DNA of 32,134 bases, taken from the NCBI RefSeq assembly GCF_001194135.2, contig NC_069005.1:27539518-27571651 (forward strand), given 5' to 3'. Made by a program: the position numbers and the translations under genes. Numbering within the stretch: the stretch's first letter is position 1; every line of letters begins with the position of its first letter. Below the pieces are notes generated by a model. That model was given only the letters and a program-made list of their open reading frames with translations. It searched no databases and was not told the origin of the DNA. Shown here piece after piece: positions 26,857 through 27,703 of this stretch. This DNA is from Octopus bimaculoides. Its lineage: Eukaryota.

Positions 26857-27703
26857 GTGCCATTGGTTACGTTAAAGTTCTGACATCCGAGGTGTGGGCT
26901 TCGAACAAGAAACCTTCAACAGGGATGGCCAGCTGTACAGAGGCCAGTCCTACTGAGGCCAATTCTACTGAGACCACTTCTACTGAAGCCAGTTCTACTG
27001 AAGCCAGTTCTACTGAGGCCAGTTCTACTGAGGCCAGTTCTACTGAGGCCAGTTCTACTGAGGCCAGTTCTACTGAGGCCATTTCTACTGAGGCCACTTC
27101 TACTGAAGCCAGTTCTACTGAGGCCAGTTCTACTGAGGCCAGTTCTACTGAGGTCACTTCTACTAAGGCCAGTTCTACTGAGGTCACTTCTACTGAGGTC
27201 ACTTCTATTAAGGCCAGTTCTACTGAGGTCACTTCTACTAAGGCCAGTTCTACTGAGGTCACTTCTACTGAGGCCAGTTCTACTGAAGTCACTTCTACTG
27301 AGGCTAGTTCTACTGAGGTCACTTCTACTGAGGTCACTTCTACTAAGGCCAGTTCTACTGAGGTCACTTCTACTAAGGCCAGTTCTACTGAGGCCAGTTC
27401 GACTAAGGTCACTTCTACTGAGGCCAGTTCTACTGAGGTCACTTCTACTGAGACCAATTCTACTGAGGTCACTTCTACTAAGGCCAGTTCTACTGAGGTC
27501 ACTTCTACTGAGGCCAGTTTGACTGAGGTCACTTCTACTGAGACCAGTTCGACTGAGGATGTGCCCAAGGCAGACACTGGAGAAGATCTGAAGGCTAAAC
27601 CACTCACATCTACTCTCAAACAGATGACCGATGCCGGACAGTTCTCCTACTCCAGTATTTGCGCTCTGGCACTGAAGGTACTCTTTGATGACAGATGGCA
27701 TCA
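26857..27703 (+). CDS. TMCO4: TMCO4-like protein, first major coding exon (probable ATG 26925): S/T/E repeat tract, then LKQMTDAGQFSYSSICALALKVLFDDRWH
   Basis: Acceptor ttttctttttcaccAG, donor CA|GTAAGT, open frame. The 3' end aligns without gaps to the human TMCO4 stretch I recall (ELTEANRFAYAALCGISLSQLFPEPEH). Confidence 0.85.
26928..27557 (+). repeat. Coding minisatellite, 42 x 15 nt (gccagttctactgag / gtcacttctactgag)
   Basis: Counted from the ORF translation: 210 aa = 42 pentapeptides, no indels. Confidence 0.95.

Follow-up and report, generated by a model that had tools for sequence, protein, structure and literature searches.

A 15-nucleotide coding repeat at the start of TMCO4 in Octopus bimaculoides, probably a minisatellite enlarged in frame

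Introduction

In Octopus bimaculoides, a tandem array of 15-nucleotide units stands at the beginning of an open reading frame that runs on into sequence resembling TMCO4. The locus raises the question of how such an array came to occupy the start of a gene, whether it is part of the protein, and what a tail of this kind may mean for its host. The window considered here is a stretch of 32,134 nucleotides (contig NC_069005.1, positions 27,539,518 to 27,571,651 of the forward strand), identical in sequence to GCA_001194135.2 CM046625.1. All features below lie on the forward strand and are numbered from the first nucleotide of the window.

The gene that carries the array

Four exons with GT-AG boundaries (26925–27703, 28233–28290, 28436–28580 and 31589–31721) encode exactly the first 371 residues of XP_052832600.1, a RefSeq protein titled 'transmembrane and coiled-coil domain-containing protein 4, partial [Octopus bimaculoides]', and residues 1–210 of that protein are exactly the array. 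UniParc has an older entry (UPI00071D8C59) with this N-terminus; the array-bearing protein model is already public in both RefSeq and UniParc. The second coding exon (28233–28290) lies between AG and GTGGGT sites, the third (28436–28580) encodes VRVNIKAF...LINNG in the spliced translation, and the fourth (31589–31721; RYDARSRV...RVSQ) is followed by a GTGAGT donor at 31722.

When only the residues that the window encodes outside the repeat served as query, an exhaustive HMMER search gave XP_052832600.1, a 661-aa protein, as its top match at 98% identity (over its residues 211–280), and the same query also matched TMCO4 from molluscs, echinoderms and a hemichordate. A search with the C-terminal part of XP_052832600.1 identified 1767 TMCO4 homologues. 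The protein matches the Pfam family DUF726 (PF05277) at 9.2e-87, with 291.6 bits against a cutoff of 22.6, and the O. sinensis orthologue matches it at 5.7e-127. The DUF726 domain is encoded 3' of the window, which holds the first four coding exons. In an alignment of 30 sequences, G551, S553, G555, D612 and H653 are invariant so that the GxSxG motif is kept together with the Asp and the His; S553/D612/H653 would correspond to S759/D817/H858 of yeast Mil1. Also invariant are Y330, D331, R333 and R335 of the N-terminal block (DAGxFSY..., YDARxRV). Judged by these comparisons, the array belongs to the TMCO4 orthologue of O. bimaculoides, as the original prediction held.

XP_052832600.1 departs from its orthologues in two places. 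It is without the exon for EE..KRxALIGLATVGGGTLIG (at residues about 371–372 relative to the orthologues), and an aberrant segment (SGYLKNRPKVAATKVWTVRRG) occupies residues 523–545 where the orthologues keep a conserved stretch. These two faults account for the 'partial' label and for low AlphaFold2 confidence in those places, and probably stem from assembly gaps 3' of the window.

The array exon is preceded by a polypyrimidine tract and an acceptor AG (26855–26856). It opens with a 68-nt leader (26857–26924) that contains no ATG and whose frame is open into the annotated start codon of XP_052832600.1 (26925–26927), which is placed inside a degenerate first repeat unit and has a good context (G at −3 and G at +4). 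The array follows to 27554 and is joined by a weakly constrained, non-repetitive linker of 23 codons (27555–27623; EDVPKADTGEDLKAKPLTSTLKQ) to the start of the N-terminal helical domain (27624–27703; MTDAGQFSYSS...), which is conserved in all TMCO4 orthologues. The exon closes at a GTAAGT donor (27704). The expectation that the array would sit in a properly bounded exon, in frame with TMCO4 sequence, was thus borne out.

Anatomy and composition of the array

Tandem Repeats Finder places the array at 26927–27558 (period 15, 42.1 copies, 84% matches, 0% indels, score 865) and ranks it as the top-scoring tandem repeat of the whole window. Counted in codons from ATG 26925, it forms a coding minisatellite of 42 x 15 nt, or 210 aa, at 26925–27554, with the pattern [E/K][A/V/T][S/T]ST and the consensus unit GAGGCCAGTTCTACT, encoding EASST. 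Both the repeat finder and the codon-register count agree with the 42 indel-free units seen originally; the register used at that time (26928–27557, [A/V][S/T]ST[E/K]) describes the identical array shifted by one codon. The main unit types are EASST (13 units in four spellings), EVTST (12) and KASST (6), and 59 of the 630 array bases depart from the consensus. With up to two mismatches allowed, the consensus occurs 38 times in the window, every time within the array, against 0.05 expected from shuffled sequence.

From 5' to 3', the array consists of four diverged edge units, a homogeneous EASST block, and a stretch in which EVTST alternates with K/EASST. This alternation in the 3' half creates a 30-nt higher-order period, and identity is consequently higher at a lag of 30 (0.90) than at a lag of 15 (0.84). 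The interior contains runs of identical units, with 11, 8 and 6 copies of three spellings, and the longest exact repeat inside the array is 64 nt. Unit composition differs between the two halves.

Ser and Thr make up 58% of the encoded residues and Glu 16%, the net charge is −27, and one residue in 210 is Pro. There are 33 S/T-x-x-D/E sites in 213 aa, in keeping with the earlier observation that most units form S/T-x-x-E, and the two N-S-T sequons noted before are located at aa 13 and 178. No hydrophobic stretch follows ATG 26925 (maximum Kyte-Doolittle 9-mer of 0.1 in the first 70 aa and 0.63 in the first 230), which agrees with the reported lack of a signal peptide, and by the same scale no hydrophobic segment was found before residue about 370. 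A Pfam search with the array matched no repeat family.

Comparison with other octopods and TMCO4 orthologues

The window was compared with the orthologous loci of O. sinensis (L001, by way of isoform X1), O. vulgaris (L002) and Argonauta (L003). The acceptor, the 68-nt leader and an ATGGCC start are common to the three Octopus species. From this homologous ATG, homologous units number 42 in O. bimaculoides, 6 in O. sinensis and 8 in O. vulgaris (CAI9740779). The O. sinensis N-terminus (XP_029651124, XP_036369347) reads MATST EASST EASPT ETTSN EASST EASST and then KDVPN. The comparison across Octopus species called for in the original prediction therefore returned three unit counts for three species, and the length variability that it anticipated is found between species. 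Its notion of an array grafted onto TMCO4 has to be replaced: a short repeat is present at the homologous start codon of the congeners and is enlarged in O. bimaculoides.

In Argonauta hians (L003 6001–6065), the ATGGCC start is followed by (ACC)n, encoding MA and a run of approximately 19 Thr/Ser. The repeat is absent in two Logan transcript clusters and a Sepia-like model (MEGESE...), and it is absent in the aligned TMCO4 orthologues of other molluscs, echinoderms, arthropods and vertebrates. The array is accordingly lineage-specific, as first suggested, being present in the three Octopus species, with (ACC)n in its place in Argonauta, and absent outside the octopods. From ATGGCC to the conserved Met there are 37, 52, 62 and 233 codons in the four octopods, in frame every time.

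The tail was defined as the residues before the conserved DAGxFSY block and was measured in the 143 Met-start sequences of a 150-orthologue alignment. Its median length is 35 aa (5th–95th percentile 13–120), and the O. bimaculoides tail, at 235 aa, is the second longest of the 143. Periodic tails occur in octopods only. The chimpanzee tail is 35 aa, consistent with the short N-terminus that the original prediction gave for human TMCO4. The possibility that the array is general in TMCO4 orthologues, which would have denied its novelty, was also looked at; sequences of the squid/cuttlefish type and about 140 further orthologues have short tails without a repeat. Octopod tails are the most Ser/Thr-rich of 132 orthologues, with fractions of 0.62, 0.54 and 0.36; the median of the family is 0.16.

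The flanks of the array allow its rate of change to be judged. O. sinensis and O. vulgaris are identical over the 68-nt leader and the 149-nt unique part of the exon and differ in the number and order of units; array turnover is therefore faster than point substitution. The edge units of O. bimaculoides match congener units, with ACA followed by GAGGCCAGTCCTACT at the 5' edge and a common 3' junction of AGTTC[A/G]ACT followed by [A/G]AGGATGTG. Since the edge units are homologous to those of the congeners, amplification took place in the array interior. O. bimaculoides and O. sinensis are separated by 2 synonymous and 7 non-synonymous codon differences within the unique exon part. Five of the seven are in the linker, where 5 of 23 codons are non-synonymously different, which points to low constraint in the tail. 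Among distinct unit variants, 11 non-synonymous and 5 synonymous changes stand against 11.3 and 3.7 sites, a ratio of approximately 0.7 that is indistinguishable from neutrality.

Predicted structure and cellular location

AlphaFold2 was run on an alignment of 30 sequences. Residues 1–226 were predicted without secondary structure (pLDDT approximately 30) and the linker also scored poorly (pLDDT < 50), while the array directly precedes a helical domain at residues 231–365 modeled with high confidence (pLDDT = 90–97). The array is thus predicted to be an acidic, intrinsically disordered tail of about 21 kDa, and the acidic disordered tail proposed at the outset is upheld by both the net charge and the pLDDT values. 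A PDB search identified no relative of the array and none of the TMCO4 profile.

TMCO4-EGFP has been reported to be diffuse and to be recruited to the ER by RAB18, and the authors of that study considered TMCO4 an orphan lipase that is soluble in part (PMC10641524). In yeast, Mil1 carries a Ser-Asp-His triad and associates with membranes peripherally (PMC4751606). By analogy with these family members, we infer that O. bimaculoides TMCO4 would be cytosolic and peripherally associated with membranes.

Origin of the array

The array is probably an in-frame coding minisatellite of the first coding exon that was enlarged by slippage or unequal exchange and is tolerated in the least constrained part of TMCO4. 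A short seed of about 4–8 units would already have been present at the TMCO4 start in the genus Octopus. Units would then be gained and lost by replication slippage and unequal exchange, 15 nt at a time and in the 3' half also 30 nt at a time, as the anatomy of the array suggests; a step of 15 nt, being divisible by 3, never breaks the reading frame. Amplification of the seed in its interior would have led to the 42 units of O. bimaculoides. The product would be a Ser/Thr/Glu-rich, polyanionic, disordered N-terminal tail of approximately 21 kDa, placed right before the conserved helical domain in a DUF726 serine hydrolase that is cytosolic and recruited by RAB18. Constraint in the TMCO4 family is lowest in the N-terminal tail, so that a long one would be tolerated there, and the expansion was most likely neutral or nearly so. 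It is possible that the O. vulgaris/O. sinensis lineage contracted its array instead, the comparison having no outgroup inside Octopodidae.

Since most units carry a CK2-type S/T-x-x-E site, heavy CK2-type phosphorylation of the tail on Ser and Thr is plausible as a side effect. A stronger reading, which we consider unlikely, is that the tail is a selected polyanionic brush, multiply phosphorylated by a CK2-type kinase or modified by O-GlcNAc, whose length would tune solubility, RAB18-dependent recruitment or hydrolase activity. The density of putative sites, the high net charge and the position of the array next to a folded N-terminal domain in the AlphaFold2 model are in its favor, as is the origin of the family's most Ser/Thr-rich tails from two different repeat types, which could reflect selection for Ser/Thr-richness and not neutrality. 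Set against this, sister species differ freely in the number and order of units, the unit variants are without clear purifying selection, and a non-repetitive tail of about 35 aa suffices in most orthologues. The more specific proposal that octopod TMCO4 has been selected for a modifiable Ser/Thr-rich tail, one that arose independently in Argonauta out of (ACC)n and in Octopus out of the 15-nt unit, with the 42-unit allele as a length-tunable phospho-brush, would seem a rather improbable one. If true, the brush would alter RAB18-dependent recruitment of the orphan lipase TMCO4 or its function at lipid droplets and the ER, and the 42-unit allele could be polymorphic among individuals.

Start of translation

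The openness of the array says little by itself about its translation. The array is open in four of six reading frames; ORF length, lack of stops and lack of indels are therefore not coding evidence by themselves. The absence of stop codons was rejected as evidence for the further reason that a stop-free state is expected even without selection: of the 45 possible single-base changes to the consensus unit, only 1 gives a stop in the coding frame, and approximately 27% of neutral arrays with 59 changes would also be stop-free. Two long antisense ORFs (26867–27619 and 26916–27800) are by-products of the array. Elsewhere in the window, compound (CT)n and (CA)n microsatellites extend over about 1 kb (18495–19435), and the long 'ORFs' there are low-complexity artefacts.

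Translation of the array is supported by conservation and by gene models. The repeat is placed in the CDS in four octopod genomes that were annotated separately, O. bimaculoides and O. sinensis by RefSeq and O. vulgaris and Argonauta by the submitters. From these we infer that the array would be translated from ATG 26925. Exact look-ups of the genomic array-exon ORFs from the three Octopus species gave no match in the collection searched. An alternative, to which a fairly low probability is given, is that the main product starts at the in-frame ATG 27624 (M234), reached by leaky scanning or through an acceptor at 27623/27624 (...tctcaaacag/ATG), which would leave the array as 5'UTR or as an optional isoform segment. 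This ATG is conserved in cephalopods and stands at the very beginning of the conserved domain. Directly before it, a pyrimidine-rich stretch ending in CAG (27600–27626) is kept in O. sinensis and could be a cryptic acceptor giving an array-less isoform. The uninformative openness of the array leaves room for such a start. However, ATG 26925 is the first ATG in the exon and its strong context compares with a weak one at ATG 27624 (C at −3 and A at +4). The ATGGCC start is moreover kept in four octopods with every length difference preserving the frame, and the four annotations agree in treating the repeat as coding.

Upstream exons and the leader

The 68-nt leader (26857–26924) differs at one position from O. 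sinensis and O. vulgaris, as compared to a divergence of approximately 12% in the flanking intron and SINE (binomial P about 0.002). The single change is synonymous in the leader frame that opens into ATG 26925. The leader does not align with that of Argonauta. It may be coding sequence upstream of the ATG, or an element of the 5'UTR kept under constraint.

The O. vulgaris TMCO4 model splices into the same acceptor and has two additional upstream coding exons (L002 6001–6063 and 45391–45441). A candidate homolog of exon 2 of that model (KQCVWRKNILYAYSYQS) was found in the window at 26051–26101 (tblastn, 88% aa identity). It is followed directly by a donor (CACA/GTATGT), is in frame with the leader, and may belong to the 5'UTR or extend the coding sequence upstream; if the acceptor at 25995 is used instead, the frame is shut by an in-frame TGA at 26033. 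The other O. vulgaris upstream exon (MSARWLAIGAEKYLEEFGVGV) is situated 41 kb upstream in that species, which falls outside the window. If the O. vulgaris extension is real, the array may be internal and not N-terminal in the protein model; it is in the CDS under either model. A Pfam search with the upstream-extension peptides gave no match.

A TMCO4-like model from a chiton (Liolophura) also has the heptapeptide SARWLAI in its N-terminal extension, for which chance is unlikely. SARWLAI may represent a first exon, or a uORF peptide, that has been conserved.

Copies of a SINE-like element abundant in octopus (recurring translation ...LLTNHMVPGSVPLRGTLGKCLL...) lie at 5437–5664, 6593–6817, 21046–21403, 26650–26800 and many more places. 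The copy at 26650–26800, which immediately precedes the polypyrimidine tract and acceptor of the array exon, is kept in O. sinensis and O. vulgaris.

Copy number and topology

The count of 42 units comes from one short-read, gap-rich assembly, with 12 N-runs in the window. A 480-nt block is duplicated at 100% identity at 23108–23587 and 24132–24611, on either side of the N-run 23588–24131, and is almost certainly a gap-flank assembly artefact. It is conceivable, at a low probability, that the repeat is real and its length wrong, either inflated by the joining of two haplotypes or collapsed. The gap-rich assembly, the exact duplicate flanking a gap 3 kb upstream of the array, and the derivation of both array-carrying database proteins from one and the same assembly all point in this direction. 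Against an error of this kind, the longest exact internal repeat of 64 nt is below typical read length, the two halves are unlike in unit composition and do not suggest a simple haplotype duplication, and no N-run lies within or adjoins the array. Short-read assemblers usually collapse such arrays instead of expanding them, which counts against an inflated copy number.

A mucin-like, O-glycosylated extracellular or luminal stalk, one of the two forms of tail envisaged in the original prediction, is very improbable. Tandem repeats with 58% Ser/Thr and two N-x-S/T sequons speak for it and the single Pro against it, and it was rejected on topology: no signal peptide or hydrophobic segment occurs before residue about 370, and the family members are soluble, cytosolic or peripheral proteins binding cytosolic RAB18 or AP-1 (PMC10641524, PMC4751606), so that the sequons are irrelevant.

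Relation to known repeat systems

With a period of 15, a multiple of 3 in the annotated frame, and a copy number that differs among close relatives, the array has the properties of a coding minisatellite. It belongs to a well-known kind, the intragenic variable tandem repeat, and does not reveal a new mechanism. Such repeats have been described in yeast FLO1 and HPF1 and in Candida glabrata adhesin genes (PMC3899988, PMC2566889, PMC7263189). As in those genes, head-to-tail units of a multiple of three nucleotides lie within an ORF and give a Ser/Thr-rich disordered product. As in intragenic minisatellites generally, copy number outpaces point substitution, interior units are homogenised and edge units have diverged. 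Unlike the yeast proteins, which are mostly secreted to the cell wall or surface and whose repeat number changes adhesion, the host in this case would be a cytosolic hydrolase.

The host itself shares with other TMCO4 proteins and yeast Mil1, which are alpha/beta-hydrolase-like, a DUF726 domain with the GxSxG Ser, Asp and His, a Gly/Ala-rich hydrophobic segment and a conserved N-terminal helical block. It differs from other members, with their non-repetitive tails, in the length of its tail and in being alone strongly periodic.

CK2-phosphorylated acidic Ser/Thr clusters occur in the disordered proteins Nopp140 and treacle. The array is similar to them in its dense S/T-x-x-E sites and in being an acidic, repeated, disordered segment of a presumably intracellular protein. 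In contrast to both, it shares no sequence homology with them, its unit is a strict pentapeptide, and its phosphorylation is predicted from its sites. With the PTS domains of mucins it has in common Ser/Thr-rich tandem repeats derived from a variable minisatellite; unlike them, it is nearly devoid of proline, lacks a signal peptide, and belongs to a protein that would reside in the cytosol.

Significance

For annotation, the lesson is that both the copy number and the true N-terminus (the RefSeq start as opposed to the upstream-extended O. vulgaris model) should be treated as provisional. ASSTEVTSTK and ASSTEVTSTEVTSIK are recurring tryptic peptides of the array. The array is also a potential hypervariable marker for Octopus populations. 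It presents a clean case of a coding minisatellite quickly remodelling a protein terminus, with 6, 8 and 42 units in three congeners and flanks that are identical in two of them, and it provides a natural length series for asking if the N-terminal tail of TMCO4, a poorly understood RAB18 effector, matters.
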